From NCBI GenBank assembly GCA_047495785.1, contig JBLDXI010000014.1, positions 620,001 to 684,000 of the forward strand: a DNA stretch of 64,000 nucleotides, given 5' to 3'. Source of the DNA: Lepidodermella squamata (lineage: Eukaryota > Animalia > Gastrotricha). This document shows positions 17,808 to 43,487 of this stretch, in pieces; within the stretch, counting starts at the first letter, position 1; each line of letters starts with the position of its first letter. The notes beneath the pieces are model-generated. The model made no database searches. It was not told where the DNA came from and was given only the letters and a program-made list of their open reading frames with translations. A program made the position numbers and the translations under genes.

Positions 17808-20579
<2,772 letters not shown>

Positions 20580-21805
20580 AGGGAAGACGGCAACGAGAAA
20601 CTAGCACAGTGTGTAATGATATATCACAGCTAGACTGTCTAGATAAAAAGAAGCATGCACATTATAAACATGGCGAATATCAAAATGGAGCCACGATCAA
20701 GAATCATAATTAACCAAGACCTGCTTGGAAATATACATTTATCAGTCAGAAACATTCATCGACGATTCATCGAAGCAGCACCTATGTGCTTCACGCTGCA
20801 TAGTCCAGCAATGAGCGACGAACAGATATTAAAACCCAACTGCGAGTTGACTAGTAACTAGTAGTTGAATATAATATTTCACAAAATAGTGCATATTAAT
20901 TTGCAAGAGATAGCTAAATAAGCGGCTGCTAGCTGGTGGTAACAAGTACAGAGATACAGGCACCAAGATCCAAGATGAGAAACAAGGTAATTAGAGGAAA
21001 ATCAAAAACAGAAAAATGAGAGAGTGATTCAAATCTCGTTTCAATTTCCATTTAAAATTGTCTGACGATGATATGGCGCCGTTGTGCACCGAACGGGGTC
21101 ATCTTGCCGACGAGATCCAGCCGGCGTTGACGATTTTGACACCGACAGAGAGAACACAGAAACACCAAGTCGACTTAAAAATTGTGAAGGTCGGAATTTT
21201 TAATAATATCAAATATCGCACCTTTTATGTTAACAATTTATTTTTGTTCAGCGCGATAAATGATTTGAAAATTATTTTATATTGGCGGATAAAAATCGTT
21301 TGCCGCTGATCACCCATCCTTGTATCTCTTTCGTGATTTTTGGTGTCCGGTTACTGACTTAGTCCTAGACAGGACACATTCCGGTGTGGTGCATCACGTG
21401 AGGCCTGGCATATGCTGCCTATTTTCTTACGTCTGCCGAACTATTTTGCGTATCATCTGTTGTCTGTTGTCCGCCTCCTCTTGTAGTATCTAGTTCAGTA
21501 CGTGATACGTGATGAATCGAGGACGGAGAATCATGTGTTTCAATGTCCAGTTATTAATTTCTGAACTTTGCACTTGGAAATATCTTATCCTTCAGGTTTA
21601 ACCCTGGTCACCATGTCGGAGAAATGAGAAAGCTCATCAACTCATATCTTCCATTCTTTCTTTGAAACATCACTCACAATTCGTCAGTACATCTGCCTTT
21701 ATTCAAGACTTGTCAGATACTTACTCATCTGATGAGAGTAGCTGATTTAGGTTATCAATAATCAGTGCCCATGTTAAATTATTTGTTAAATTATTTAGGT
21801 TCAGT

Positions 21806-24800
21806 ATGAAGTATTTCATACTCTGGTTTTCATTGTTCACCTGGAATCTTAAAGCTGTCGATGGAATCGAGTTCTCTTTCGAGGAGTAAGCTTATTTACG
21901 AGAATTATTTATTAATTTAAAATTATTTTGAATTAATGAAAACGTCATAGAGACGAGACAATTTGTCATACTAAGATTAACGTTTTATGAACATTTTGAT
22001 GGAAGCGAAAGGAAACGTGTTTTAGTTGCGAAAGCTATGGTTATTCACATATTGGCGACTTGCATACTTATGCCATGAGTTGCGACGGATTTATTGCAAC
22101 CATCTTTTTTCGATTTGAATCAAGTTTCACATTGAGGATAATATTGATATAAAGAATAGCACTGATACGAGGTTATCGTGAAAAGGGGCGAGTCAATGGC
22201 ACTTTATCTCGCTGCTATGATGAAAATGTTTACGTCATTAAACTATTCTGCTTTTTTTTCAAGTTTCGGTGTACTATCGGATGGAGTGAGGAAAAGGCTA
22301 GCATATTCATGGGAGACCGACATGGAATTTAGCCTGGCAAAGGAGGTAATCTGATCCGATCTGCCATTGATTGTTTTTCTATTTTCCTATATTTTTCAAG
22401 ACGGTGATATCAGAAGTTGAACGTCGGTTAGCTGCCGGTGAACTTAGATCGGTGGGAAATACAAAAGCTCCAGATCTTGCAAAGAAGATCGCAGACTCTC
22501 TTAGCAAGCTGCTTGCAAGAAGAAGCCGAACTGTCGAAAGTGTAGTATCCTATGTTGAAGAAAAATCTGCTTCATTCAAGTTTGATCCAGCAATTACCAT
22601 GAGCGACGTAACTGTTACCCAAATGAAGGATGACTTCCCTGTATCTCGGAATGAAAAGTTCGGAGATGACGTGGATACAAATAATTTCGCAGTTCATATT
22701 CCTGTTGATATATATGAGGGCGGGCTTGACATTCTGAACGATATGAAATGGAGCGAGCAAATGATTTCAGTTTTCAACTCCAGCGCTCGCGTTGACGCTA
22801 GCGTGAATTGGCAATATTTTGCGTCTCGTGCTGGCTGGATGGTTCAATGGCCGGCCAAACAGTGTCAGAGAAATCCTGATCTTTACGATGCGCGAATGGA
22901 ACCTTGGTACTTGCAAGGACTGTCTGCACCCAAGCATATGCTCATCCTTATAGACACGTTAGTTTCCCTAAGAATGTCTATTTATTATTTCATTAATGAT
23001 TGCTTGTTACAGGAGCGGTAGCACGAATGGAATGATTATGCGTTTGATCAAAGTGGCGGCCACGTCTCTCGTAAACAGTTTAGCAGACTGGGATCGCGTG
23101 TCTGTAGTCAGCTTTTCTGAAACACACGATTGGGCTTCGTGTGCCAAGCGCTTTTTACCTGCCACTCCGTTGAACAAGCAACTGTTATCTGAAGCGATTA
23201 ATAGACTTGGTTCCAAAGGCCAAGCACAGATTGAGCCAGTCCTCCGCTTTGCTTTGAACCAGTTTAGCGACTTGGAAAATTCATCGAGTGCTAATTACGA
23301 TGGATACAAAACTTGCAACAAGATGGTTGTCATTTTGACCGATGGCGATGAAACCTTTGATCCCAATAACTTCATCGAAAGCTACCTTAACCAGTCTGTT
23401 CGCATATTTGTTTACGGCATTGGCACAACAATTACTGGTACCGAGGCGCTGGAAGAGTTGGCTAGGAGAACCAATGGTGAATATGCTGAAATAGCTCAAA
23501 TGAATGCGATACGACACACCGTGCAGGTTAGTTATGCGAGATTCAACCTTAAAGTCTGTGTTAACTTGATTATGGGACAACAAGAATATCCACAAAAGGC
23601 TTTGTACATTGAACAATACCGACGAGGAGAGTCATCCCGTCCTTGTCGCAATGGTACCTGAATCTAAGCCAGGCGCTGATAGTATTAGATACTTTAGTGA
23701 CCCTGATTTGGCAATTGAGGTAGCGTAGACGCATGCCCCGTTATTTTCTCTTTTGTAAGCTGAGCATGAAATTTCATTGACTTGGGAATTGGCATGACAA
23801 CTGCATGTAATAACTTGTTTTTTTTCTGGTGATTTAACTGAACGCAGCGGCTGTTCCATTTGCAACATATATCAATGACGAATGCAACTGTGAATGTCGT
23901 TAATTCTCCTTATATTAGAAAGGTACTATCTCAGCAGCACTTTCATCTATTTTGTCTTGTTTTGCAGTGTTTGCTTACCCAAGACCCATTAACAACTTAC
24001 CCAGTGTGGCGTGATCGTTGAACAATCATAGCATCCCTACTGTAAGTGTGACGTTTTCCTGATCAATTATCGATTTGGGTCTTATTGTTGTCTCTACACT
24101 TTTCAAGGGATATTTGCCGTCGCTAGCCATAGCGAAACCGGCTTTCAACCAATCGACTGCCGAGGATAATGTAAATTATAATCATAACAAGGTTCGCGCT
24201 ATTAAGTGGGATTTTTTAGAACCCTCCCAAAATTATCGGTGTTGCTGGAGCGGATATTCGGTACCCTGAGCTAGTCCATGTGCTCAATCCTGTTTTGGTG
24301 AGTTCTGATACGAAGAGACTTCATTCGTAATTCATCGGTTCCATTTAGTACGACCCTGCCGGATACGCTTTGATTGTTGCTCATAATGGCTATGTTATGA
24401 TGCACTCGAGGCATCTGCCCCGAAATGTTGGTCCGTTGGACAACGAAGATCCAGCCATCCACGCGTTCACCGAAGTACCAATTCACATTGCGGACAGCGA
24501 ACATTCCGCTGTCCCGTTGTTGTACACGGATTGGGTGGAAGACAGCCAGCCTGTGACACGCGAACGGAAAACTAGTAGTTTGCTGTATTATGGCAACAAA
24601 GACTACGCAAGTGAGGAAAAACGTTGGTTAGCCTACACTCCGGTAGCGAATAGTTCTCTCGGCATTGTTGTTTCAATTCGCGAAAACGGAATGGAAGCGC
24701 TTGAACCGACCCCGAAACTACCGATCGATTTCCGCCTGCGTGAAGCAGTTTCAGGCGAAGTGCCGTTTTTCGTCGATTTACGGCGTATTTGCGGAGCGGC

Positions 24801-26730
24801 CAGTAGCATTGTTGCCGATCGTATAGCCAAGGTGCTAGAAGGCACTGTTCGGCAATCGACGTCTGCAGCCAATATCACTGCCACAACTGGAACGACTCAA
24901 CCACCTACAGTCAATCTCGACCGAAATGAAATCGATAACGAAGACATCGAGCGTTTCGGTTTCGAGCCCCAGCGGGAGCCGGAGATACAAACCACGACAA
25001 TGCCGCCGACCACGACATTACCGCCCCCGAACTACAATGTTTTGTACCACCAGGCGGCTATCACCTTCCTGCAATACGCCGTGAACGATCAGAAATTCAC
25101 TAGTCGTTACTTGTGCGACGATTCAGCGGTTCGCTACGCCGCATTTGACATGATTCTACTCCGCCAGTTGCTTGGAGCGCTGACTACGCTGCAAATGAAT
25201 CCGAATGACAATTCAACGATGGAAAAACCGAAAATCGCACCGAATTTTCACATCAATGACGATAATGACATCCCGCTTGATGATCTGTTTGTCGGTGAAG
25301 CAGTCGCATGGGTTGTTGTTTTCCCTAGCGGAGTTCACTACTCGAGGCCATCAAAGTAAATCATTTGTGACATTGATAGGTTTGGTTATGTATGTATTGC
25401 TTCTTTTTTTAGCGGCCTTGAAAAAGCTTGCATCACCGACCCGCTGAAGTTGTCAGTCTATCAGCACGCGGCCTATCAACGTGACAGGGTGTTTGCCCAA
25501 CCAGCACCTTGTCCTGAGTACTCCGTTGTCGCCAGATCGATTCACATCCGATCCTTGTCTCTTGCTACAGTTTTAGTCATTTACAACTCGTCGAGCTTGT
25601 TGCCTGAAAATTGTACGAATTGCATGCTTTTTGACGATGGCGGTTTCCTCCTGGCAGCAAGTGAGTTTAATGCGAAGGATTACGATGAATTTTTGACCAT
25701 TTATTTGATTCAAGGTAACACAACTGTGGCGAAACAAGTTGGAACGGCGCTTGAGTTGTTGGATTTTAGCCTCTACAGCCTTTTGGTGAGAGAATCTAAC
25801 GTCTACACGGTTCACAGCAGCCGAATGCTTGTTCGTCCCTGCCCGCCAAATTCGAACAGCTCGACCTACACCATTATCCCCGAGGTTATACCGCAACAGT
25901 CGGCTGGATTCAGCCACTTACTCAGGGTACGTTTTACCTGCTAGCATTTAATTTAGTGATTCACTCCTGTTCTCTTACCTAGTCGTCGATCATAAACAAT
26001 CTGATGAGCGTTTCGTGGTGGGCGACCTTATTTTCGAGTATAGGCCGCGTTATTGCCGACAGCACCGCTCAAGCTATGAATACGCTGAATCCAACAGCGG
26101 ATTCGATGGGAATGGCCACACCGACTGTGGAAGGATCCGGCGACGGCGCAACCACACTGCCACCGACTCACCACCACGCCACCGATACGGGCAAAGTGAA
26201 GTGCTCACGAGAAAGCTTGTCCGACGACTACGGCCTGCCACGCAAGGGCAAAATCTGTGCCATCCGCCACCCGACTCTCATCCCGGGCCCGTCGTTCTAC
26301 ATCTCGCAACTGCGCCCGTTTGCTTGCGGCCATCATTGCACGCGGACGGCTGCTTGGGCTCCGGTACGCGGCACCAATTTGCTGTTTGTAGTCGCTGACC
26401 CGCCTTGCGGTGGCTGCGAGAACAAGTCTCCGACGGAAAGCTCGTTCGGGTTTCTGTACGAGACGGACTCGTCATTCGACACTTGCCACCTGGCTTCATC
26501 GCCCAGAGGCTTCTCGACGCTGTTTTCGACGCACCAGTATTTCGAGCAACCGGAACAGATCAACTGGAAATGCACACCGTTGAATTTCGTGAGTCATTTA
26601 TCAATTATTTGTTATCAATTAGTTTATACGTTATTTTTTATAGCCGCCACCGTCATCGGCAGTGTCACTGCGCACGAGTACAGGCCTTGCTACAATTGCT
26701 CTTCTTATCGCTTTGTTGCCTCGCTGGTAA
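21806..26730 (+). CDS. CACNA2D: Voltage-gated Ca channel alpha-2/delta subunit-like (VWA_N + VWA + Cache), signal peptide and probable GPI signal
   Basis: Signal peptide MKYFILWFSLFTWNLKAVDG; AVHIPVDIYE, WQYFAS, DLYDARMEPWY, MIDAS LIDT|SGS, ILTDG, RIFVYGIG, LFDDGGFLL, GTNLLFVV; last exon gives ...PSSAVSLRTSTGLATIALLIALLPRW*. Confidence 0.88.
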
Positions 26731-27198
26731 CAGCCAAATGACTCTATTTTAATTCCTCTGTCGAAGTTTTTTCTGTGTACAAAGAACTGAATTACCTGAT
26801 ATTGCGTCATTGCCTGTTGACCTGATGAAATTTGGACCAAAGTGATCTACTTATTTATATATTCTTGTTTTGAGCTGTACTGAATTATTATAACGACGTG
26901 CTTGCGTGTTATTTCATCATCATGATCGCTCTTAAACCGCTGAGACTCTTTACATCGCAACTCATGACCAACTTGAAACAATGGTGCTACTCCTGTTTTA
27001 TTGCTGCTTTGCACTATATTGCTCGTTATTTGTCTCTTCCTACTATGCATTTAATATTCAACTATCTAGTGAGAAGTTATTCGCTAAATTTCATGAAAGT
27101 AAAAATTCCACTAAAAGCTGACGTGCTACCATGTATTGTATTGTATTGTTCAATTTCGCGTTACCAGTAGGTTATAAGAAGATTATTTTTGAAACGGC

Positions 27199-30100
27199 AT
27201 GGAACGACGGTCAACGGCGAAACTTGACGAGATTCGCGCTATTGAGAAAGAGGTGCAAGCAGAATGGGCTAAACAGCGTGTTTTTGAGGTAGACCCACCC
27301 GCTGACTTCAAGGTGGACGAGAAGGCACTGACCACGCCTAGGGATGACAAGTTCTTCGCCACCTTCCCGTACCCTTACATGAATGGCCGTCTCCACTTGG
27401 GTCACACATTCACATTGTCAAAAGTTGAGGTTAGCAGCGTTTTTTGATGTGTGATTCTCCATTTTTAAATTCAAAATTACGAACAGTTTGCCGCGAGTTA
27501 TGAGCGTCTGAAGGGCCGTAATTGCCTTTTCCCATTGGCTTTCCACTGCACTGGTATGCCGATTAAGGCTTGCGCTGACAAGCTGCGCCGTGAGGCTGAA
27601 TTGTTCGGCAACCCGCCGGTTTTTCCGAAATACGAACTCCCGTCTGAATCAGACCCGCCGGAAACGCCCCTAGATCATTCCCACGGAGGAACTTCTATCG
27701 AGCAGGCAGTCGCAGCCCGCGGCAAGTCGAAAAAGTCGAAAGCCGCCGCGAAAACCGGCCCTGGTAAATACCAGTGGCAAATTATGGCTGGCCTTGGCTT
27801 GACCGATGACGAAATTGCTAAATTTATGGACCCACAATATTGGCTCACATATTTTCCGCCCTATTGCCAGCAAGACGTCACTGAAGTTGGCTTCAAGGTG
27901 GATTGGAGACGCAGCTTTGTCACCACCGATTTCAACCCGTACTATGATTCGTTTGTCCGCTGGCAGTTCTTGAAACTGCGCGAGTTGGGGATGATCAAGT
28001 TCGGCAAGCGTTACACAATTTTCTCGCCACTTGACAAGCAACCCTGCATGGATCATGATCGATCTGAAGGCGAGAATGCCGGTCCTCAGGAGTACACTCT
28101 GATTAAACTGAAGGTTGTTGCGCCTTATCGCGAAAAAGTTGCGCCTCTTGTCGGAAAGGACGGCAAGCGACAGGTTTTCCTCGTTGCTGCTACCTTGAGA
28201 CCCGAGACCATGTACGGCCAAACCAATTGCTGGCTAGGTCCAGATCTGGACTATGTTGCTATTGAAATGGCGGATGGAAGTGTTTTCATCTGCTGCGAAC
28301 GCGCAGCTCGCAACATGGCTTACCAGAACTTGACGTCTGAATTCGGTAAATACACGGTAATTGCCCGCTTTAAAGGCTCAGATGTGCTGGGATCGGCTCT
28401 TGAAGCGCCCCTTGCCACTTACCCGGTCGTTTACGCCCTGCCAATGTTCTCGGTCCGAGCTGATAAAGGAACTGGCGTTGTTACCAGCGTGCCATCCGAC
28501 GCCCCTGATGACTACGCGGCTCTACGCGATGTGCAGGAAAAGAAACCACTGCGTGAGAAGTACAATCTGACCGACGACATGGTTCTGCCGTTCAAGCCTG
28601 TACCGATTATTGACGTCCCCGGCATCGGGAAACTGTCCGCCGTCGATACCTGCGAGCGTTTGAAAGTCAGCTCGCAAAATGATAAGCAGAAGCTGGCCGA
28701 AGCGAAGGATTACGTCTACCTTAAGGGTTTCTATGAAGGAATCATGGCGATTGGGCCTTATTCCGGAAAGAAGGTTTCTGATGTCAAAAAGACTATTCAG
28801 GGCGAGATGGTCGCCGCCGGTCAAGCCGTGCTCTACCAAGAGCCCGAGAAGTTGATCGTCTCACGCAGCGGGGACGAATGCGTTGTTGCTCTTTGCGACC
28901 AGTGGTATTTGGACTACGGAAATGAGGAGTGGAAGTCGGTCACCCGTAAGGCCTTGGACCGCCTGGAAACATTTTGCGAGGAGACTCGTAACATGTACAA
29001 GGCGACCTTCGACTGGCTTCACGAGACGGCTTGCTCGCGTTCATATGGTCTCGGAACTCGCTTGCCGTGGGATCCTCAATATTTGATTGAAAGTTTGTCG
29101 GATTCAACCATTTACATGGCGTACTACACCGTAGCCCACCTGCTGCAGGGCGACGTCAACGGCCACGCGGTTGGCCCGCTTGGCATTCGTTCTGAGCAAC
29201 TTAAACCTGAAGTTTGGGACTACATCTTCTGTCTGGCTGATAAGCCACCGGCTGATTGCGGTGTTCAGCAGAACACTCTTGACCAGCTGCGCCGCCAATT
29301 TTTGTACTGGTACCCTGTTGACCTGCGCGTCTCTGGCAAAGATCTTGTGCCTAACCACCTCACTTTCTACTTGTACAATCACGTCGCCATTTGGGGTAAG
29401 ACCCCGAAGGGCGCTCCGGAGCCTTCGAGCCGTTTCTTGCCGGCTGCGGTTCGCGCAAACGGCCACGTTTTGCTCAACTCGGAGAAGATGTCGAAATCAA
29501 CCGGCAATTTCCTGACTCTCAGCGATGCCGTCGCCAAATTCTCGGCTGACGGCACCCGTCTTGCCCTTGCCGATGCCGGTGATTCGACTGATGACGCGAA
29601 TTTTGTTGAAAAAACCGCTGATGCCGGTCTGCTGCGTCTCTACACTTGGGTTGAGTGGGTTCGCGAAATCGTCGCCAAACGCAATGAACTGCGCTCTGGT
29701 CCGTTGAACTTTGCTGATAAGGTCTTTGACGCCGAAATCGGTCGTCTTGTCCGTGCCACCCAGGGCGCCTTCGAGAAGAGCATGTTCCGCGATGCCGTCA
29801 AGTTTGGCATCTACGAATTTCAGGTTTGATTTTTCTTGCTATATGAACAAGTAAAAAGTGGGCTATGGCAAAATTGAGTGCGCGAGAACATCTTAAAATT
29901 TAATATTTTTAAGGTGGAATTTTTGACATTGGTACTTTTGCTGTTGAAATGTGCAGCCTGATGACATCGAGCTTAATTTTTATTTCCTTTGGCTCCTCGT
30001 TTATTAATATTGAAAGCCGCATTAAAATCTGGCGAATTAAACAATATCGCACTCCACTTTTCACTTTTTAAAACGGTCCTATAATATCCAAGTTGAGCTT

Positions 30101-31164
30101 GTATTTAATCGATATATTTTTAGGCTGCTCGCGATTCTTACAAAGAATTGGCCCAGGCTGATCTGCATCGCGATGTCATCATGAAGTACATAGAAGTTCA
30201 AACTATCGTCATGTCGCCGATCTGCCCTCACATCTCGGAATTCACGTGGAAATTGATTGGTAAGCAGGGCTCCGTTCTGACTGAACATTGGCCTGTCACC
30301 GCCGAACCGGACGCAAATTTGATCCGAGCCAATCGCTATATCTGGGAAACACTGCCGGAATTCCGTGCCCGCCTCCGCGCGGTGATGAACAAGCTGACCG
30401 CCGGCAAAGTTGCGCCGATTGTCGGCAAGATCCAGGTAGCGCGTGGCTACCCGGCTTGGCAGATCACCATTCTTCAGAAGCTGTCCGAAATGTGGAAGGC
30501 CGGCAACGGATCTCTGCCCGAAAATCGCCAACTTGCGGCGCAACTTCTTACTGTCCCCGAACTGAAGAAGGTATCGGGTAAAGTAATGGGATTTGTCCAG
30601 GGAGTTAGGGAACGCATTGAAGCCGACGGCGCCGAGGCGGCTCTGCGTGATTCTTTCGATATTGATGAAGCGTGGTTGTGGAATGAAATCACCGCCTATG
30701 TCCGCTCGACTCTGGAACTCGAGAATGTTTCAACCGAGTTGGTTGGCGAGGAGGTTCCCGGTGCCAGGCCAGGCCGGCCCCTGATAAATTATTCCACCCC
30801 GGCATTTGTCGACGTGAAATTGGTCAACACCGAGCCTTGCAGTGGGTTCTTCGAGTTCAGTGTCCCGATTATTGACGGAGACACGGCCGATGGTATTCTC
30901 GGCAGAATCCGCCGGAGCATTGAACGAACCCTGCCAGCAGCGACAAAGTTGTTCGTGTACGCCGACCCAGCCGTCGGTCCTCGCACCATGCCACCAGTTC
31001 CGGCCGATGCCATTGTCGAGGTGGATGCGTCGGCGCTGTTTTCAATTGAGACGAAGCCTGAAGAGAAGGTGACAGTTACATTCGGCAATAATGGCACCAA
31101 ACGCACGATTGATACTGCCAAGCAGATCATTTACGTGACGAAGCCGGTCAGCAATGGAAAGTAG
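27199..31164 (+). CDS. LARS1: Cytoplasmic leucyl-tRNA synthetase (exons 27199-27429, 27487-29823, ~30124-31164)
   Basis: [15 protein letters not shown] (HIGH), TLRPET editing domain, [16 protein letters not shown]. Confidence 0.97.
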
Positions 31165-31600: not shown

Positions 31601-33001
31601 ATGGGAGTTCAATCAGTTGGTATCGTTCTCAAAGAAAAACCACTCTTCTACGCTGGTGAAATCGTCAACGGTGCTTGTGAAGTGGTAACTAGCGAAGAAG
31701 TGCCGCTTGCAAGTCTAACTGTAGCTCTGTTGGGATACACCCGGGTGCACTGGACAGAAACTCACTCACACAGCAGTGGCGAAACGACCGAAACCACGAC
31801 TGTAGTTTTCGAAGATTCAAAGGAGCTGCTTAGATTGACGCAAGAAGTGACCCTTCCTGGAGGTAAAATCTGCCAATTTTGGAAGTTGTTATTCGATAAC
31901 CTATCTATAAATGCCTTTGATATAGGAATTTTGGCGAAAGGCCATTCCTCGATTCCTTTTTCATTCCAGTTGCCGCTCAAGTAATACTAGCGCATTGAAT
32001 TTCACGAAAATTTATAATTTGTTGAAGTTTGATAACGTCATTTGAAGGCCCGCATGGCTACGTTCGTTATTGGATTGAAGTTTCACTTCCTCCCGCTGTT
32101 TTCTCCATTAAAATTGCCGGTATTCCTGTAAAGGTGCTGCAAATAATCGACACAAATATTCCTCAGTATCAGGTAAGAAATACTAAAAATTATTTGCAAC
32201 AAGTTACACTGCATGAAACTAGTTTTCTGTGGCTGGATCAGACACGAAAACGATATGCTGCGGCCTATGTGCACAAGGACCATTGTTAATCGAGGCTAAA
32301 ATGGACCACGCGGCTTATTGCCCAAGTATATCGATGAGCTCTTTGGAATGATTTTTCTATTCTCTCCTCTATTGTGTTCTAGATGATGAGCTCTTCTTGA
32401 CGGTTCAATTCACAAATAACGCGGGACGGGAGGTTACACCCTACGTCAAACTGGTCCAAGAATTACTCATGAGAGAACACGAAAGTAAGTTTGAAAGATC
32501 AAGTTTTAAACCTCTGTTCAGCTTTTAAAAATTGTTTCAGGTTGCGAGCACAGAGCGAAACGAGATTTCGCAATGCAACCAGCAGATCACAAATTAGCCG
32601 CTGATTTCTTCAAACCTTTGGCTAATAGCTCAGCTAGTTGGCAGGATGTCGCCTTCAAAGTACCCGAAGTTATTCCATCAATAAACTCGTCATTAGTGAA
32701 TGTCAACTATCACGTCGAAGTCGGATTCATAATTCCTCGAGCCTTTGATCTCAAAGTTTATTTACCAGTCGTGATCGGAACGATACCGCGCCGAGGGGTC
32801 GTGACTTCCCAGCCCGGGTCACATTCTCGAAACGCGCCGTGGACTGGCAAGGGTAGCCACAGCGTCAAGGGGCGACCTCCATCAGCCTCCACGTTCGAAA
32901 CGCTGCCTCCTCACTACAGCAGCGTTGCGCAAGAACCTATCATCGCGATGCCTCAGTGCTTTAAAAGTCTAGTAGCAGAAGCTGAGCCTATTCTGCAATA
33001 A
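31601..33001 (+). CDS. Alpha-arrestin (ARRDC/TXNIP-like), multi-exon
   Basis: FYAGEIVNG, VHWTE, IPFSFQLP, SFEGPHGYVRYWI, C-terminal LPVVIGTIP and PPxY (LPPHY). Confidence 0.88.
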
Positions 33002-33685
33002 ACACTGTGTTCTTGATGTTCCTTGACCTAGTTAAAATCCGAACACGTGATCATTTATACTGGTTAAAGAGGAATTTATTGTTCTCTTGGCTATACATGT
33101 ACCTAATTGTTGAATAATCTGTGCGATTTTTCTACTGGTGAATAAAATGGTCCACTATGAATTGAGAGCAAATGATTTAAGAGTAAAGATATAATTCAAG
33201 AGCGCAACTGGAATTTTTATTCAGTTGAATCGCTTTAATGATACGCATCACCAAATTCTCACCCCGGCACTGCGCAATATTATTTCGATAGCCATTCGTG
33301 GCGAGGATCATCACGTGAGTTTTGCGTTCGTCATTAGGTTTTGCACGTACCTAATTGCGAAGCTGCAAGCGCAGTCAAACCGCAGCCGAATAAACCCGAA
33401 AAATGAACTTGCACCGTGAAGTTTTTGCTAATTCTTGAATATCAAACAGGTGTTTGTAATTTTAATGGTTGTCGTAAATCGTAAATATCTGTTTGCCATT
33501 GATCGACCATTTTTAAACAAGCCTCCCATGGGGCCATATATACGCCTCCCAAGTCGTTGTTCTTTCAGGTATATATCCTTGCTCTTATATCTTTTTGCTC
33601 TTATTTCGCTTGCTATATGCACGCGCAATCAATATCGAAGCCATAATCGACTAATATCACGGTAGTGCAAGTCAAGACTTAAATC

Positions 33686-34894
33686 ATGAAAATGGCTAGC
33701 AGTAGCAATGAGATCAAAGTTGAGGCAGATCCTTACTTATGGCCAATCAACGGTGGATTGCAGCCTCGCGAAACTGCTCTTGTTGTCATCGATATGCAGC
33801 AAGACTTCTGTGGCAAAGGTGGCTACGTGGATATGATGGGCTATGATGTCGAAGCCTTGCGAAAACCGATTGAACCTATTCAAAAAATTCTTACAGCTGT
33901 GCGAGCTATACCAGAATTTTTGATAATTCACACGCGTGAAGGCCATCGAACTGATTTATCCGACTGCCCCGAAAATAAACTGCTGAGAAGTAAGGCGATT
34001 GGTGCTGGCATTGGCGACCGCGGTCCTGCGGGGCGAATTCTGGTGCGAGGCGAGCGAGGTTGGGACATAATTGATGAATTGCGACCCCTCGACAACGAAA
34101 TCATTGTGGACAAGCCGGGAAAGGGCGCATTCTACTCAACAGACTTGGAGCTCATTTTAAGAACCCGAGGAATAAAGAGCTTGATCATCTGCGGCGTTAC
34201 GACAGATGTCTGTGTTCACACGACTATGCGGGATGCAAATGATCGTGGGTTCGAATGCTTACTGCTCGAGGACTGCTGTGGCGCCACTGATTTTGGAAAT
34301 CACCTGGCTGCAGTAAAAATGGTGAAAATGTCAGGGTGAGTACGTAATGAAGTGTTTATTTGTTGAAGTATCTCACTTTGGTTGGAAAAGCTTGAAACCC
34401 AATGTTTTATTGTTTTCAGAGGGATTTTTGGGTCCGTTTCGAATTCAGGGTCCTTACTGAAAGCTTTACATCGGCTAAGCTCCTCGCCTGGGCTCATTCC
34501 GAACTCGAATACTAGCGCTGTGAAGCTAGCCGTCAACGGGACACTGATGCGTGGATTGGAACTGAATCAAAACCTTCTGAACGTCGGAGCTCGGTTTCTC
34601 TTCGAAGCTAAAACTGAGCCATGTTATCGGCTTTACTCCATCAATGACGTCCACCCTGCTGCAGTCAGAGTTAGTAACGGCGGGTCTGCAATGGCTGTCG
34701 AGGTGTGGGAGGTTCCATCTGAAGGCTTGGCTGTTATCTTGCTGAAAGAGCCACCAGGCCTCAGTATCGGGAAAATGAAGCTGGCTGACGGAACTGAAGT
34801 CCTTGGTGTACTTGGCGAGCCTGTTCTGTGCGAAAACATGCTTGAGATAACCAAGTTCGAAGGTTGGCGCAATTACATCGCCTCGAAAAAGTAA
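33686..34894 (+). CDS. biuH: Biuret hydrolase (BiuH-type isochorismatase/cysteine hydrolase) fused to an allophanate-hydrolase C-terminal (GGCT-like) domain; intron 34336-34419
   Basis: [78 protein letters not shown]; the spliced frame continues into [14 protein letters not shown]...[11 protein letters not shown]...VEVWEVP...EPPGLSIGK...GWRNY. Confidence 0.9.
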
Positions 34895-35199: not shown

Positions 35200-36518
35200 T
35201 TACGCACCATATAAAACGAGAAGTTCAACTAGTTCGTCGAAGCCCATAGCTCTTGCGATCATAACAGGCGTTGAATTTTCGTTGATTTTCAGCTTGGGGT
35301 AAGCGCGTTTCGTTTTGACGTTGACATCAGCTCCATAGTCGAGAAGAATTTTCGCTATTTCCATCCTGTTGTGACAACATGCGATCGCCAGCGGGGAGAA
35401 GCCGTCTGTATCAACGCTGTTCACGGCTGCCCCAAGGCGTATCACCCGACGTGTCAGATCAGCATCGCCTGATGCAGCGCACTTCATTAACGGCGTGGAA
35501 TTATCCGAGGGATCTCGCTGATTCACGTCGGCCCCGTTATCCAGCAAGATGCGAATAATTTCGGGGTAATTTATACTCTTCCTCCTCAGAGCATTCCCTG
35601 CTGGTTTCCCAAGCTCCAAGCTTCCTCCTCCTTTCTCGCTAAGGATAGGAAGAGGAAGGTTACGAAATGCTGCCATGAGTCTGAAATGATCATCAACATC
35701 AATAATCAAGATGATGGATTTTCAAAGAGAGATTCGTAAGCAAAAAGCAAAAATTATTTCACTTACGGGGATAGTCCACGGCTATCGTGAATATCTACCG
35801 GTGCCCCAGCTGCAATCAGGAGGTTGACGACATCTGTGAACCCTCGCTGAGCTGCTCGAAGTAACAAGGTTGTTCCGTCGGACATTTTGAAGTTAACTTC
35901 AGCGTCGTAATCAATCAGAAGTCGCGTTATGGAAACAAAGCCGAAATTGACGGCCGAAAATATAGCTGGAGACCCGTCAACATCGGCCATGTTAACATCC
36001 GCGCCTCGCATAAGCAGCAGTTTACACATTTCAAGATGGCCATTCGAGACGGCGTAGAATAACGCGGACCAGCCGCAGCGATTCTCCGCGTTCAAGTCAG
36101 CGCCTCGATCTAGCAATAATGCGACGGTAACAGTGTGACCAGCCGCCGCTGATCTCATCAAAGCAGTCCATTTATCAGCATCCCGCTGGTTAACATCAGC
36201 GCCGCTGTCGATGAGTTGACTCACGATCTCGCTGTGCCCGTTTTCAGCTGCTTTTATCAGGGGTGTGTAACCGTCGTATGAGGGCGAATTAACGCAGGCG
36301 TGGTTCTGAAGCAGTAGTTTAACCATCTCACTATCGCCGTTGTTCGATGCCCACATTAAGCTAGACCAGCCGTCACAATCGCAATAGTTGACGTCGGCAT
36401 TTTGGGAGAGATAATGTTGGACCTTTCGCGTGTCACTCAATTTCACCGCTGTTATCAAACCCACATTCAAAGGATCCGGCTCGATTTCCTCTGCCGATGT
36501 GGAATTGTACTCCGCCAT
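35200..36518 (-). CDS. Ankyrin-repeat protein (2 exons)
   Basis: ~10 consecutive G.TPL..AA..GH.EIV.LL...GADVN repeats. Confidence 0.9.
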
Positions 36519-38016
36519 TGTATTCAGATTTTTCACGTTTATGGAAAGCGGAAAAATGAATCAAAAATTGTCTTGAAGCTACACCGCAGTCATACAAGCA
36601 TATGTTTTTCACCGACAGGATTGAGTAATTTCGTAGTTTTTATTCTTATTCATTGAGAGAATTACCCATGTTTCATCTTGAATCGTCAACGTATTTTGCT
36701 GTTATAACAATTTGAGCACGTTAAAAGCGCTCTTGTTTCCCGCGACACAGGACAGGGATCGTTTGGTCACGCCTATATGAATAATAATAATGAATAGTAA
36801 TTTTGAGCCACGGCTTTTGTGTAACAAGCTGAAGTCAGCTTAAGAAAAAACAAAGCTGAAAGTTATATAATAGGGTGCGAACGACATGTCGTATAATCTT
36901 TGTTACAGGACTTGCGACGGTAAAGTACAACGGTTATATAAACTTGGCGTGTTCCTCAGCTTTCATTTCTCGGCGGAACTTTTTGAAAGCTACGTCATTA
37001 ACGAGCATCAAATTAGCTTCAGGATTATTTCCACCTTCTACAACTGAAGCTGAGGCCTAAAAACCAGTTTAAAATTTGTTTAAATCAATATGAAAGAATT
37101 ATCCAAAATACTATTAGGATCTCGGCATTTTTACGCTTTTCGATACGACGACTCCATTTTCTTTTTGCTATTTTGCTTTTTGGGTTGTGCACTTGTTTAC
37201 GTGATACGATGTACGATAATGGAGCTCATTTACCTCATTTTTATATATAACTGTGCAAGTGGCGCATTGCAAGATTGATAACCATTGGTATACAGGTATA
37301 AATTCCGCGATGATTGACTGCATAATTCACCGCCTACCTCATCTCGGTTCGCATCTGTTAACAATGCGAAAAACTCATTCCTAAAATAACCCACTTTTAT
37401 ATACAGCACAATGAGGTTTCGGTACTTGAACATATAATGTAAATGGCGATGATTACGATAAAGAAATACTACGACCACCTACTATCCTATGGCAAAGTGA
37501 TTGTGTTTGGAGCTTTCATTTTATATGGCGTGATATAGGCTGACCGGCGATATACGTATATAAAATAATGGAATATGCGTATATTTAGCGTTATTTATAA
37601 ATGGCGGAAAGAAATAACGCACCGCCTTGCGCCGGGTGTCGGTACATCATGCGGCTGGCTATTTTGGCTTTTCGCCTTCTGCGCGCTCTCTCAGAGAGCA
37701 AACGAATTTTTTAGACATTTTTCCTGCGTTTGCTCTTAGCAAGCATTGAAGGTATAGAAGTATACATAAGCGTGCATCGTTTTTTATGATATACAATAAT
37801 ATACATACGATTATTTTACATATTATATTATTCAACTCATAGTTTCAATGTGCCATATTATATAAAACAAATACGGCATACAGCATAAGTGTCGCAGTGA
37901 AAGTTGCCAAAAAAACTCGACCAAAACTTGGAGTTGGGCCCATTTTTTCTGTGTCCCAAATTACACTCTTTCTGGAAAATTTGTAGACATTTTTACCTCA
38001 ATCTTTGCGATGTGAC

Positions 38017-39364
38017 ATGGTCCTACAATCGCTTAGCATTTGCATCGGCGAGGAGAAATGTTTCTACCCTGGCGAGTTAGTGGCTGGCCATTGCCAACTA
38101 ATTGTCGACAGCGAAGAGCCAATGGAACTGACGAGCGTGATTGTCAAAATTCACGGCGTTGCCAAGGTTTCATGGTCGGAAACCTTCACTACGACAGATA
38201 GCAGCGGGACCCATGGCCAGGTTCACACAGTTTGGTACATAGATAGTCTGACACTCCTTTCAAAGAAACAAGAGATTCACATTCAAAATGGTAAGTGGGC
38301 TCACTCGTTTCTCATTTTTCATTTTTAAATAGATTGAAATTTTAGGGCGCCTGGAACCAGGGAAGCACAACCTTCCATTCGCATTTCACCTGAAACCAAA
38401 GTTGGCGAAATTTCATTTTTACAAATTCTGAAGCTAATTTGCTGTTTTTCCTAGTATTTCGCCATCATTCGATGGGACTTACGGCAACATAAGATATTGG
38501 TTGGAGGTGATAACGAAACCCAGCAGTCTAAATACAAAGATTACCATGCCTTTCAAAGTTCTCCAACCTATTGACCTCACAATGCCCGCGCATTCGGTAA
38601 ATTAAATCGGCGATATTCTCATAATATTGTTTTCAATCTTCGATTACTTGCATTCTACAGCTCCCTGTGAATGGTGCAGAATCCCGCTCTTTGTGTTGCT
38701 GCTTCCACAACGAAGGAGTTCTTTCAATAAAAGCTCGAACTGATCGCACGGCATATTGCTCAGGTATGTTTTTGACCATCTATGTCGGTTCGATATCGAT
38801 CCTTTCTTTTGCTTTTTAGGCGATTTTATTACGCTGTCTGGTACGTTTGACAACGGCTCGAAGCGGAAGGCTAAAATTTCCGCCAAGTTGGTTCAAAAGC
38901 AAACAATAATTACGCGAGGTGGTCGGAGTAAAGTCCACACAACAAGTTGGCCATTGAACCCTGTTGACACCGATCAGCCATCGTCTTATAACCCGGTTGT
39001 TAGCAAACGAAGCGCGATGTCCTGGGAAAATGAACGCTTTATCCTGCCAGATGTCCCGGTGTCATCGAGCTGCTCGGTTATCACCGTTAGTTACCACATA
39101 GAGATTGGTTTGACAGTTCAAAACATGGCGATGATGTTCGTAAAACTGCCGATAATTGTCGGAATTTTGCCGACGCGGAAGTATCGCCTATCGTTATCTC
39201 CGTCTTCATCGCAGCAGAGTGCGGTTGATTCTTCAATGCTATCGACAATAGTTGCGCGTCAACACTCGATTTCTTCGTCATCAACTACTTCATTTTTCTC
39301 GGATTTACCTCCGAGTTACCACGAAACTATGTCTGCTTTATCAGCGCTTGCATCGCCCGCGTGA
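38017..39364 (+). CDS. Alpha-arrestin (ARRDC-like), paralog of the 31601-33001 gene
   Basis: FYPGELVAG, VSWSE, LPFAFHL, SFDGTYGNIRYWL, LPIIVGILP, LPPSY (PPxY); similar exon layout to the first arrestin. Confidence 0.88.
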
Positions 39365-39490: not shown

Positions 39491-40494
39491 TTATGAAAAA
39501 GCTACGGTGCAATCGAAAAATGATGCTATGAAGGCTCTTAGAAGTGACATAATCACGCCAGTTTGACTCGTGCCTCTTTTGGCTGTTACAAGCTCGCCCG
39601 TGGAAATAGAGATAGCTGGAGATGAGTCTGAGGTTTTTTGGTGTTGCATCAAAGTTGGCATAATTTCGTAATGTCCCCGTTCAGCCGCAACCATTAACGC
39701 ATTCCGGCCTTCGCCAATATCGTCAGCAGCTTTCATCGTCTTGTAAGTTGCGTCCGCACCGTAAGACAACAGCAGTTGAACCATTTCTAGGATGCATAAG
39801 AGATGAGGCTGGGAATAAAAATTAAAGTTATGTTGTTTTCACCTTTTTGACCGTTGTAAGCTGCTTCGATGAGAGGTGTCAGGTTATCGGAAGCATTCAC
39901 GTGGTTGACCATGGCACCGGCATCAAGCAATAGCTTAGCAACATCACAATGGCCGTTCGAAGCAGCAAAAATCAGAGGAACCGCTCCCCATTTGTCTCGC
40001 TGATTAACTAAAGCGCCGCTTCTTAGTAACATCCTAACAATCTCAGTATGGCCACCAGCACTTGCGTAAAACAGAGCTGACCAGCCGTCGTTATTTCTCA
40101 CGGCAATTAAATTAGGATAATTGTTGAGGACGACGCCCGTGGAATGTTGAACGAAAACTCGAACTACTTCGTGATATCCATTTTCAGACGCTGCGTGAAG
40201 GGCCGTGCATCCGTCGACATCAGTCGTACAAAAATCAGCCCCTCTGCCTAACAGCAATAAAACCGTGTCCAACTGGCCAAATCTTGCGGCTTCTATTAAG
40301 GCAGTAGTTCTTGTATACGCCGCTTGTTCATTGACGTTACTGCCTTGGTCAATTAGGCTTTGAACTAGCGTTAAATTTCCGATTTTCGCCGCGGCAATGA
40401 GTGGCGTCGAGCCAAAGGTCAAATCGTCGTCGACTCCTGAATCTGCGTCATTGCTTTGCACGACTACGTGATAGTGACCGACATCTCGGCGCAT
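39491..40494 (-). CDS. Ankyrin-repeat protein (2 exons)
   Basis: ~7 ankyrin repeats (TPLIAAA, TALIEAARFG, TALHAASENG, SALFYASAGGH, ...). Confidence 0.88.
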
Positions 40495-40897
40495 GTTATC
40501 AATGTACTAGAAAAATTGAAGTTTATAAATTTCCGAAATTTCTCTAGAAAAAAATCGCAGACCTGATGATTAAACTTCCGCTTTCCACATTTTTTACAGC
40601 GCGCATGCCACAGCATGGCGTGACTTATTGGAAGAAACAATCAATTCAAATCATCTAAAAAATAATTGAGAAGCGGAAATAGGAAAAAGCTTTGCGTATA
40701 TTGCCCCAAAAAAATCGATTGGACGAGACAAAAGTAAACGTGAAAAAAACACGGGAAGCATATATCTTTTAAAGAACAAATGATTTTAAAGAACGCTGCT
40801 AAAAAATATATTCAATAGTTGATGTAAATGAACAAGGGAAAACTGAGATTGCACGGAAAACTTGACTAGTGGCAATGAAAAATTGGAATAATCATGT

Positions 40898-42115
40898 TTA
40901 ATCTTGACTGTCCACGTCATCTTTCGTCGCGATTGAGTACGCCGTATCGCCATCCTCGCTTACTGCCTCAAAATCAGCGCCGGCTTCAATGAGGATCTTG
41001 GCCTGATCGATCAGCGCCCGTTTCGCTGCGATCATCAACACAGTATAACCAGCTCCATAACCAAAAGCTCGCGTCGTAGACTTTGAATTAATCTGTGCTC
41101 CAGCACTGATTAAGGTTTTCATTGATTCCATAGAACCGCTGTTTGCAAGTAGGTAGAACAAAGCTGTCCAGCCGTAGTCGTCTACAGCTTCGATATCAGC
41201 GGCGCCTTCGATGAGGTATTGAATAGTAATTGGACCAGCAGTCGCCGCTGCCCAATGCAACGCCGTCCTACCCAAATTATCACGCATCGTGACATCAGCA
41301 CCTCGCTCCAGTAGCATTTTCACAACCTCGCTGTGGTCATTGCCCGATGCCCAAAACAGCGCTGTTTCGCCAAGTTGATTAGCAGCGTTAATATCGGCAC
41401 CAAATTCGAATAAAAATCGTGAAATTTCAAGATGGCCGCGTCGGCACGCTTTCATCAGCGGCGTCCAGCCGGCAAGGTCACGTTGGTTAACATCGGCGCC
41501 CAATTTAGTCAAAACCTGAAGGGCGTCAAAATTACCGATGCGGGCGCATCGACCCGAGGCAGATTCCCCGTTGCAATCTGTTGCCTCAATATTAGCGCCT
41601 GATTTAACCAGATATGTTGCTACTTCGCCGCTGCCACCGTTTACGCTCCAGTGAAGAGGGGTTGCGCGATTGACGTCGACAGCTTGAATATCTGCTCCTT
41701 TTCGCGCCAGTATTTCAACAATTTCAAGTTGGGAATTCCAGCCGGCTTGCATTAATGCCGTCATGCCAAATTTATTCCGGGAATCGATTTTAGCTCCGAT
41801 TTCTGATTGACGACAAGCAAAAATTGTTATGCAATTAGTTTATGAAAAAAATGATATGGCTAATTTATTACCTAGAAGAAATAGTACCATATCCTCGTGT
41901 CCTCGCCCGGCAGCCAAAATGAGAGGAGTCTGCTCAGTGCTGCTGTCGCAGGTGCATATTGCGTTGACATCGGCGCCTTTGGCAATAATCAGCCTGGCAG
42001 CGTCTAAATGGCCACTCCAAACCGCCTGGGCCAAGTAGCGTGACAATTCGTCGATGGGTGCAACGAAAACGTCATCGCCATCATCGTCATCGCATAGCAA
42101 CTGGTCATCGTCCAT
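40898..42115 (-). CDS. Ankyrin-repeat protein (2 exons)
   Basis: ~10 ankyrin repeats (TPLILAAGRGH, TPLHWSV, TPLMKACRRGH, TALHWAA, ...). Confidence 0.88.
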
Positions 42116-42956: not shown

Positions 42957-43487
42957 TCATCTGTGTTCTAGCTCGTTCATTAGCTTCGATCTCACTTCCA
43001 TGAGAATTTTACCGAGCCGATTTTGGCCGCGCCATTCAGTTTGATCGGTCGCCCGGGGATCTGTCGTGCCAAGGCCGATACCCCAAATCAAGTCATTCGG
43101 CGCCGCTTCCACCAAATAATATTTGCTTGTTTTCAGCAGCTTCACTTTTAAATCCTCATTTTGACGAAATTTAGCTTCGACTGCTGCCGTCATCGCTTCG
43201 TAGCTGGCATCGTTCCACACCGCTACATCGAAGTTCCGAACTTTCCCACCGTAAGCCTTTTGTTTACCAGGCTCCTTTGTGGCTAAAATGTTGGCCATCA
43301 TTTCTTGGTCATTGAATATTTCTGCTTTCCGATATTGAAAGTAATGCTCGCCGCAGTTGAATTTCAAACCATTGATTTCGTAATTTGAAGGATGAAAATT
43401 GCTCATGAAGCTTTTTGTGCTGTAAAATAGCATGCACTCAAAGCTTTCACCGTTCGCTCGTCGACAATTGATGATATTTTCAGGCAT
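42957..43487 (-). CDS. NADAR-family (YbiA/COG3236) hydrolase, single coding exon
   Basis: FMSNFHPS, EHYFQYRKAEIFND, KAYGGKVRNFD..W, KFRQN, LVEAAPNDLIWGIG, WRGQNRLGKILMEVR. Confidence 0.9.
   Translation of the reverse strand: MPENIINCRRANGESFECMLFYSTKSFMSNFHPSNYEINGLKFNCGEHYFQYRKAEIFNDQEMMANILATKEPGKQKAYGGKVRNFDVAVWNDASYEAMTAAVEAKFRQNEDLKVKLLKTSKYYLVEAAPNDLIWGIGLGTTDPRATDQTEWRGQNRLGKILMEVRSKLMNELEHR

Follow-up and report, generated by a model that had tools for sequence, protein, structure and literature searches.

Bacterial biuret hydrolase, BiuH (EC 3.5.1.84), converts biuret to allophanate and ammonia through a cysteine thioester, and allophanate and carboxybiuret are both unstable N-carboxy compounds (PMC7948467). 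The Rhizobium leguminosarum enzyme (6AZO/6AZQ; NCBIfam NF050097) combines an isochorismatase-like fold with a catalytic triad, a set of second-shell residues and a C-terminal tail; the triuret hydrolase TrtA (6XIX/6XJE) has the same fold and triad. Allophanate hydrolase (AtzF or DUR1,2; 4GYR, 4ISS) ends in a C-domain, AH_C (PF21986), whose Pfam clan assigns it a GGCT-like fold. Whether the role of this domain in allophanate hydrolase is catalytic or scaffolding is disputed, and a decarboxylation-type role has been proposed for the AtzF C-domain. AH_C also occurs as a stand-alone protein, such as 5C5Z, which was deposited as a 'glutamyl-tRNA amidotransferase'. To our knowledge, no breakdown of biuret or of related urea condensates is known from animals. 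Here we describe a gene of the gastrotrich Lepidodermella squamata (GCA_047495785.1) that joins a BiuH-type hydrolase to an AH_C domain of the stand-alone type; it lies at 33686-34894 on the plus strand of a 64,000-nucleotide stretch of contig JBLDXI010000014.1 (positions 620,001 to 684,000), hereafter the window. This gene (copy A) has a paralogue on the same contig, C14 (copy B), and both probably descend from a bacterial biuret hydrolase with a product-handling AH_C domain that was acquired horizontally, became a nuclear bilaterian gene, gained introns and was duplicated.

Copy A has two coding exons and a product of 374 residues. Family and homology searches were run with the exons separately, and the joined protein was used for translation, numbering and the ratio of nonsynonymous to synonymous divergence (dN/dS). 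Exon 1 matches Pfam Isochorismatase (PF00857, 4.8e-42, residues 30-214) and NCBIfam BiuH (NF050097), the latter at 345.5 bits for an alignment that covers positions 1-203 of the 221 in the profile, against a cut-off of 370 and with the end of the profile in exon 2; six-frame scores against NF050097 were 350 and 354 bits, and the RutB profile reached only 117 bits on exon 1. The BiuH half scores 325 bits to Rhizobium BiuH (6AZO), 277 to Herbaspirillum BiuH and 199 to TrtA (6XIX). We compared its residues with those of 61 bacterial BiuH and 22 TrtA-like neighbours, taking discriminating positions from PMC7948467. D36, F41, K143, K146 and C176, which occur without exception in the 61 BiuH, are conserved in both animal copies, including the Asp/Lys/Cys triad (D36/K143/C176) that had been named in an initial annotation of the window. 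The same annotation had read the residues as BiuH-type rather than triuret-hydrolase-type, and both copies do carry the BiuH states Y47, Y53, D174 and T201, where the TrtA-like neighbours have F, N and E in 22/22 and Y in 18/18 aligned. Set against TrtA, copy A has BiuH residues at four of the five discriminating positions, with a TrtA-type Ala at 148, and copy B at all five. The BiuH tree places the animal pair within the BiuH clade, which is split from the TrtA-like clade at 99 in the Shimodaira-Hasegawa-like approximate likelihood ratio test (SH-aLRT). The animal protein differs from the Rhizobium enzyme in its setting in an animal genome, in the interruption of its gene by an intron, in its fusion to AH_C and, in copy A, in the replacement of Gln215 by Ser and of Ser148 by Ala.

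Exon 2 matches Pfam AH_C (PF21986, 1.8e-38, 131.7 bits), and against the allophanate hydrolase profile TIGR02713 only positions 433-563 are matched. The AH_C half scores 133 bits to 5C5Z, a stand-alone protein of 137 residues, and 57 and 43 bits to allophanate hydrolases. It shares with the stand-alone proteins the motifs AVNGTLMRG, YRLxSIxDxHP, EPPGLxIGK and GWRxY, and differs from them in forming the C-terminal domain of a BiuH rather than a separate protein. In a library of 1.84 billion representatives, the best matches are mostly of ~130-270 residues with AH_C as the sole domain found. Among 43 AH_C positions that are at least 97% conserved in 80 bacterial members, 41 are kept in both copies, the changes being M298A in both and R300G in copy B only. 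The AH_C tree places the animal pair in the stand-alone clade, from which the AtzF C-domains are split off at 95 SH-aLRT. In place of the His of the allophanate hydrolase motif VVGAHL, noted as missing by the initial annotation, alignment with 4GYR and 4IST shows the Leu of AVNGTLMRG. AtzF and DUR1,2 thus share a Pfam domain with the animal protein, but a true allophanate hydrolase is ruled out, as the amidase domain and the motif His are both absent.

Two sequencing runs bear on the gene model: X1, which is probably DNA, and X2, a 2015 run from another study, which is probably RNA. All features lie on the plus strand of the window:

33522..33566 (+), 5' untranslated exon; X2 depth starts in bin 33522-33582 and is zero upstream, so that the start is approximate
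33567..33638 (+), intron of the 5' untranslated region, 72 bp, GT..AG; joint 33566->33639 in one X2 contig
33686..34335 (+), first coding exon, with a BiuH-type cysteine hydrolase of the isochorismatase-like family; residues 1-216 and two bases of codon 217, with triad D36/K143/C176
34331..34333 (+), codon of Ser216, at the site of BiuH Gln215; Gln in 60/60 bacterial BiuH and in copy B
34336..34419 (+), spliceosomal intron, 84 bp, GT..AG, phase 2, within a Gly codon; skipped in an X2 contig, kept in an X1 contig
34420..34894 (+), coding exon 2, the second open frame, after the 84-bp intron
34420..34471 (+), first part of exon 2, which completes codon 217 with its last base and then encodes the BiuH C-terminal tail (residues 218-234); the alignment with the bacterial BiuH tail continues past the splice site
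34472..34516 (+), linker of 15 residues (235-249), rich in Ser, Pro and Asn; the fastest-evolving part, dN/dS 0.23 over residues 217-250
34517..34891 (+), residues 250-374, an AH_C domain that resembles 5C5Z and is thus of the stand-alone type, motif AVNGTLMRG; from Pfam AH_C and comparisons
34892..34894 (+), stop codon TAA

The initial annotation had given the extent of the gene and its in-frame, canonical 84-bp intron correctly, as the open reading frames (ORFs) and the X2 splice contig agree: this contig jumps 34335->34420, leaving out exactly 84 bases and extending 70 bases past the joint on the side where it is shorter. A 429-base X1 contig reads through the intron. The translation begins at an ATG at 33686, with an in-frame TAA two codons 5' of this start. 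X1 depth spans the whole stretch and X2 depth is zero upstream of ~33522. A second X2 contig jumps 33566->33639, omitting 72 bases bounded by GT..AG, which indicates an intron in the 5' untranslated region of copy A; the untranslated exon and its intron have as their basis this one low-depth contig, whose shorter side measures 27 bases. X2 contigs show ~4-8% differences from the window and a 3-base insertion (GTA, window 34519) that adds one codon in the linker; the sample therefore comes from another strain or a close relative, and so gives independent support for a spliced gene. The 84-bp intron had also been described as the joint between the two domains. It does join the exons in frame, but it is not the domain seam, lying 18 codons before BiuH homology ends: exon 2 encodes the final 17 BiuH residues, the linker and then AH_C from its first residues. 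Since the intron sits inside BiuH homology, we take it to be a later gain and not the seam of the fusion.

Copy A is embedded among animal genes, as the initial annotation had proposed. The genome comprises 121 Mb in 151 contigs, and the gene lies on a contig of 716,652 bp. Upstream are genes for a cytoplasmic leucyl-tRNA synthetase (LeuRS), which shares 61-63% identity with its annelid, barnacle and vertebrate counterparts, and for an arrestin-domain protein; downstream are ankyrin-repeat genes, a second arrestin gene and a NADAR gene. On both sides animal genes lie within 700 bp, and the GC content of 49% is near that of host exons.

Copy B is found at C14:407954-409139 on the minus strand, 246 kb from copy A, among DEG/ENaC-like channel, lectin-like, CAP-like and ankyrin-repeat genes (names based on their ORF translations rather than on domain searches). 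The two proteins are 89% identical and the exons ~90% identical; the intron of copy B (106 bp) occupies the same site as the 84-bp intron of copy A, and the two intron sequences cannot be aligned. As both copies have the common intron site and the fusion, fusion and intron are older than the duplication. Comparison of the copies gives dS 0.40, dN 0.055 and dN/dS 0.136 (Nei-Gojobori). The ratio is lowest in AH_C (0.075), intermediate in BiuH (0.157) and highest in the linker region (0.23); values this low at such a dS show that both domains have been kept under purifying selection.

An alignment scan for AH_C in 185,579 species genomes returned 80 loci at 57-75% identity, mainly in Verrucomicrobiota, Cyanobacteriota and Rokubacteria/Methylomirabilota, and we examined their flanks up to 5 kb. 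A BiuH-type gene stands near AH_C in 31 of these loci, often directly adjacent, and is 63-68% identical to animal BiuH (~290 bits); a TrtA-like paralogue is near AH_C in 37, and parts of a Bmp-type ATP-binding cassette (ABC) transporter in 17 to 22. The order is biuH, Cupin_7, AH_C on a Chthoniobacteraceae contig; biuH, ABC ATPase, trtA-like, unknown, Cupin_7, AH_C on a Verrucomicrobiales contig; and Bmp, two permeases, AH_C, biuH, ABC ATPase, trtA-like in Altericista. TrtA genes thus often adjoin the same AH_C genes in bacteria. A metagenome contig (P0299; L107 7001-8083) also has the order biuH then AH_C; as a true bacterial BiuH->AH_C fusion it is doubtful, since it leaves the BiuH consensus after GATD and probably contains a frameshift error that merges two neighbouring genes. 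This bacterial partnership of AH_C with BiuH is previously undescribed: literature searches returned no function for stand-alone AH_C, no link to biuH and no report of the animal gene. In the triuret/biuret clusters of Cyanobacteriota and Verrucomicrobiota that carry stand-alone AH_C, Cupin_7 is a frequent further member and the AtzF amidase is not nearby, an association that we likewise did not find in the literature.

Elsewhere the same AH_C subfamily lies beside AtzG-like and AtzE-like amidase genes, or is fused to Cupin_7, carbamate kinase or isochorismatase domains, the isochorismatase fusions occurring in both orders in algae and bacteria. One cluster of 22 members (P0124, 458 aa) consists of an amino-acid-kinase domain, a carbamate kinase according to one source, fused to this subfamily, which fits a carbamate-related role for AH_C. 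Waterburya has a split allophanate hydrolase (C2:2561262-2563270), in which an AtzF-type amidase (519 bits, over the cut-off) adjoins a gene for a stand-alone-type AH_C. Of five cyanobacteria with this AH_C, four are without AtzF above the cut-off and all have urease. The Alcanivorax-type cluster has an AtzH-like gene, which we take to be TrtB, after its TrtA-like gene and so in a position comparable to that of AH_C. The comparable position may suggest an analogous handling of N-carboxy products, although the NTF2-like fold of TrtB and the GGCT-like fold of AH_C are unrelated. TrtB is the carboxybiuret decarboxylase of bacterial triuret and cyanuric acid clusters (PMC7948467, PMC12625717).

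Both domains have bacterial proteins as their closest relatives. The best 120 BiuH matches all consist of this one domain (225-245 aa); their identities run from 67 to 74%, mostly 70-74%, and every named one of them is bacterial. The AH_C half reaches 75% identity, in Verrucomicrobiales. No animal protein is among the best 120-150 matches listed for either domain, other genomes of this animal group not being open to the search, and a search of JGI metagenomes returned no closer relative above 72% identity. Eukaryote proteins with the same domains are 52-66% (BiuH) and 47-58% (AH_C) identical, and come from Chromera, Chlorokybus, EukProt SM000137S00473 (presumably Spirogloea), green algae and Aureococcus. 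The initial annotation had suggested looking for the same fusion in other eukaryotes, and isochorismatase+AH_C fusions of these two domains do exist in algae and protists, one of them, Chromera velia A0A0G4IE83, in the same order as in the animal; but in most of them the domains stand the other way round or a further isochorismatase domain is present, and they branch apart from the animal gene. A set of green algal and Aureococcus proteins of ~460-530 aa (P0290-P0298, P0302, P0310) has two isochorismatase domains, of which, in most of those placed on the tree, one falls in the BiuH clade and the other in the TrtA-like clade; these look like hydrolases of triuret and biuret in a single chain.

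In the AH_C tree the animal pair joins three Verrucomicrobiota sequences, whose loci also carry biuH. In approximately unbiased (AU) tests, whose groups were named after the tree had been seen, a grouping of animal BiuH with the BiuH from these same Verrucomicrobiota loci was not rejected (p 0.316), while a single clade of the animal and all 11 eukaryote BiuH domains was rejected (p-AU 0.014), a rejection to which the polyphyly of the algal sequences adds. The horizontal acquisition put forward in the initial annotation is therefore well supported by bacterial best matches for both domains, linkage to host genes, splicing, duplication, purifying selection and the AU result. Its further suggestion, a fusion derived from an operon, is plausible given that stand-alone AH_C lies beside biuH in bacteria, but it is unproven because the BiuH tree does not resolve the position of the animal gene.

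Several observations weigh against a single acquisition of a biuret hydrolase together with its AH_C partner, and against its present use on biuret. In the BiuH tree the animal pair branches singly close to the base of the clade, separated from the eukaryote groups and with no settled placement, and the grouping of AH_C with Verrucomicrobiota has an SH-aLRT of only 82-83. Of the 80 metagenome loci nearest in BiuH (~73% identical), only one has any AH_C nearby, and that AH_C is of the AtzF type; the BiuH genes that are linked to AH_C are only ~65% identical to animal BiuH, those of the Verrucomicrobiota nearest in AH_C among them. With the nearest BiuH unlinked to AH_C and the linked BiuH so distant, two separate sources are possible, BiuH coming from a proteobacterium-like donor and AH_C from a Verrucomicrobiota-like donor, with fusion inside the animal genome. 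The single-domain character of the best BiuH matches (70-74%) favours such a course, as do the few named ones, which are of Alcanivorax, Xanthobacter and Methylobacterium type and lie in contexts without AH_C; the contexts of three of the best BiuH matches were examined, and AH_C was in none. We nevertheless consider two transfers unlikely: bacteria already hold both genes adjacent or fused, independent captures that end head to tail are less economical, and the AU test does not reject a shared grouping with the BiuH from the loci nearest in AH_C. The origin is most simply read as one capture from a biuret cluster. Descent from an old eukaryotic gene that was lost in nearly all animals would account for the BiuH-like and BiuH+AH_C proteins of Chromera, streptophyte and green algae and Aureococcus, but is improbable, as every eukaryote protein found is more distant from the animal domains than their bacterial relatives are, the eukaryote sequences are dispersed through the bacterial part of the trees, the clade of animal and eukaryote BiuH domains is rejected, and animal sequences are missing from the matches listed. 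X2, moreover, is labelled RNA by guess only, although contigs free of introns and a lack of depth between genes are in keeping with RNA. Bacterial contamination or a chimeric assembly, for which the high identity to bacterial proteins might be held to speak, can be rejected as exceedingly improbable: contigs of a different study lack two GT..AG introns, animal genes flank copy A closely on both sides of a long contig at a GC content near that of host exons, and copy B repeats the intron site in another animal neighbourhood.

The remaining points concern activity. Copy A has Ser at Q216 (Gln in 60/60 aligned BiuH) and Ala at S148 (Ser in 60/61), while copy B keeps both residues. In Rhizobium BiuH the corresponding Gln215 is supplied to the active site by the neighbouring subunit and is treated as the determinant of biuret versus triuret specificity, and the Q215A variant loses >90% of activity (PMC7948467); in view of this result and of the two replacements, copy A may be weak on biuret or substrate-shifted. 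The genome, further, gave no match to urease or to AtzD (the AtzD search being without a positive control), and neither TrtA nor an AtzF-type amidase was found, so that no complete pathway and no obvious biuret source is visible; the AtzF or urea amidolyase that the initial annotation had thought worth seeking in the genome was thus looked for through the AtzF amidase and not found. Oxidised purines and triuret-storing freshwater protists have been raised as possible sources of biuret (PMC7948467). It is conceivable that biuret activity has been lost, at least in copy A, which might act on another ureide or carbamoyl amide, or serve as a partner of copy B with one canonical domain per paralogue. 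In copy A, three BiuH positions that are 98-100% conserved carry replacements (Q216S, S148A and A151S); copy B keeps these three residues and has instead G23D in BiuH and, in AH_C, R300G at a position that is 97% Arg in bacteria. As the Gln reaches the active site of the neighbouring subunit (PMC7948467), mixed oligomers could complement one another. That changes at conserved sites fall in different domains of the two copies might reflect a division of labour or mixed oligomers, which is speculation. Loss of biuret activity is still rather unlikely on balance, though less so than two transfers: derived changes in copies A and B are similar in number (9 vs 7 in BiuH, 5 vs 5 in AH_C), purifying selection acts on both domains, although this measure does not separate the two lineages, and the triad and the other substrate-contact residues are intact in both copies.

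Under the reading that we prefer, a horizontally acquired bacterial biuret hydrolase with a product-handling domain, we infer the donor, the order of fusion and transfer, the substrate and the role of AH_C as follows. The most economical donor would be a Verrucomicrobiota-type biuret/triuret gene cluster. Fusion may have occurred through loss of the stop codon and spacer between two genes, either in the donor or in the animal, and after transfer spliceosomal introns would have been gained and the gene duplicated. Judging from its residues, the BiuH part, which is complete and has its Asp-Lys-Cys triad, is predicted to split biuret by way of a thioester intermediate, giving allophanate and ammonia, and the AH_C domain, likewise complete, would take over the unstable N-carboxylated product from BiuH. 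AH_C most likely speeds decarboxylation, of allophanate to urea and CO2 or of a related N-carboxy compound, because its partners (BiuH, TrtA, AtzE, the AtzF amidase and carbamate kinase) handle N-COO- compounds and because it occurs in genomes that are urease-positive and AtzF-negative; such a role is in line with the one proposed for the AtzF C-domain. The net yield in the animal would be one ammonia per biuret together with urea, amounting to detoxification or to a partial salvage of nitrogen.

More tentatively, and as a possibility that we rate below even, stand-alone AH_C may be in general a decarboxylase of N-carboxylated ureides (allophanate, carboxybiuret, N-carboxycarbamate), which replaces the TrtB or AtzF step and feeds urease; the animal would then have taken BiuH and AH_C as one enzyme that turns biuret into urea, CO2 and ammonia, with the paralogues perhaps splitting its activities. 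Fusion and bacterial neighbourhoods together yield a concrete hypothesis for the function of AH_C, including that of 5C5Z-type proteins. If the proposed activity is true, this would be the first biuret-degrading enzyme of any animal, and a bacterial BiuH that has been duplicated and maintained would represent a metabolic capacity gained by an animal through gene transfer, in a genome that appears to hold many such transfer candidates. Because copies A and B differ at the residue proposed to separate biuret from triuret hydrolysis, they offer a natural experiment on specificity.

Some other matches and neighbours may be recorded. The best 'allophanate hydrolase' match in the genome, on C55, was set aside, since its ORF translation resembles a GatA/QRSL1-type amidase and is mitochondrial GatA-like; the other AH_C matches, on C74, belong to three tandem genes that are of GGACT type by ORF translation and by weak AH_C/GGACT-clan scores. 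An ENA metagenome scaffold of a related animal (38,930 bp) has a LeuRS 74% identical to that of the window and shares the order of an alpha2delta-like gene followed by LeuRS (window 18683-31146), but gene order diverges directly after LeuRS, and neither BiuH nor AH_C is present within the 10 kb fetched downstream of it; in this genome an ORC4 orthologue lies at C14:575660-577039, on the other side at a distance of 44 kb. The synteny of that scaffold is uninformative, being readable as neither insertion nor loss. A NADAR-domain ORF of 176 residues (PF08719, 4e-47), intron-less, stands at window 42957-43487 on the minus strand among the ankyrin-repeat genes. Arrestin-domain genes (31601-33001 and 38005-39364, plus strand) and ankyrin-repeat genes (35200-36536 and 39491-42115, minus strand) occur in the same order on both sides of copy A, as if a unit of arrestin and ankyrin genes had been duplicated locally in tandem.

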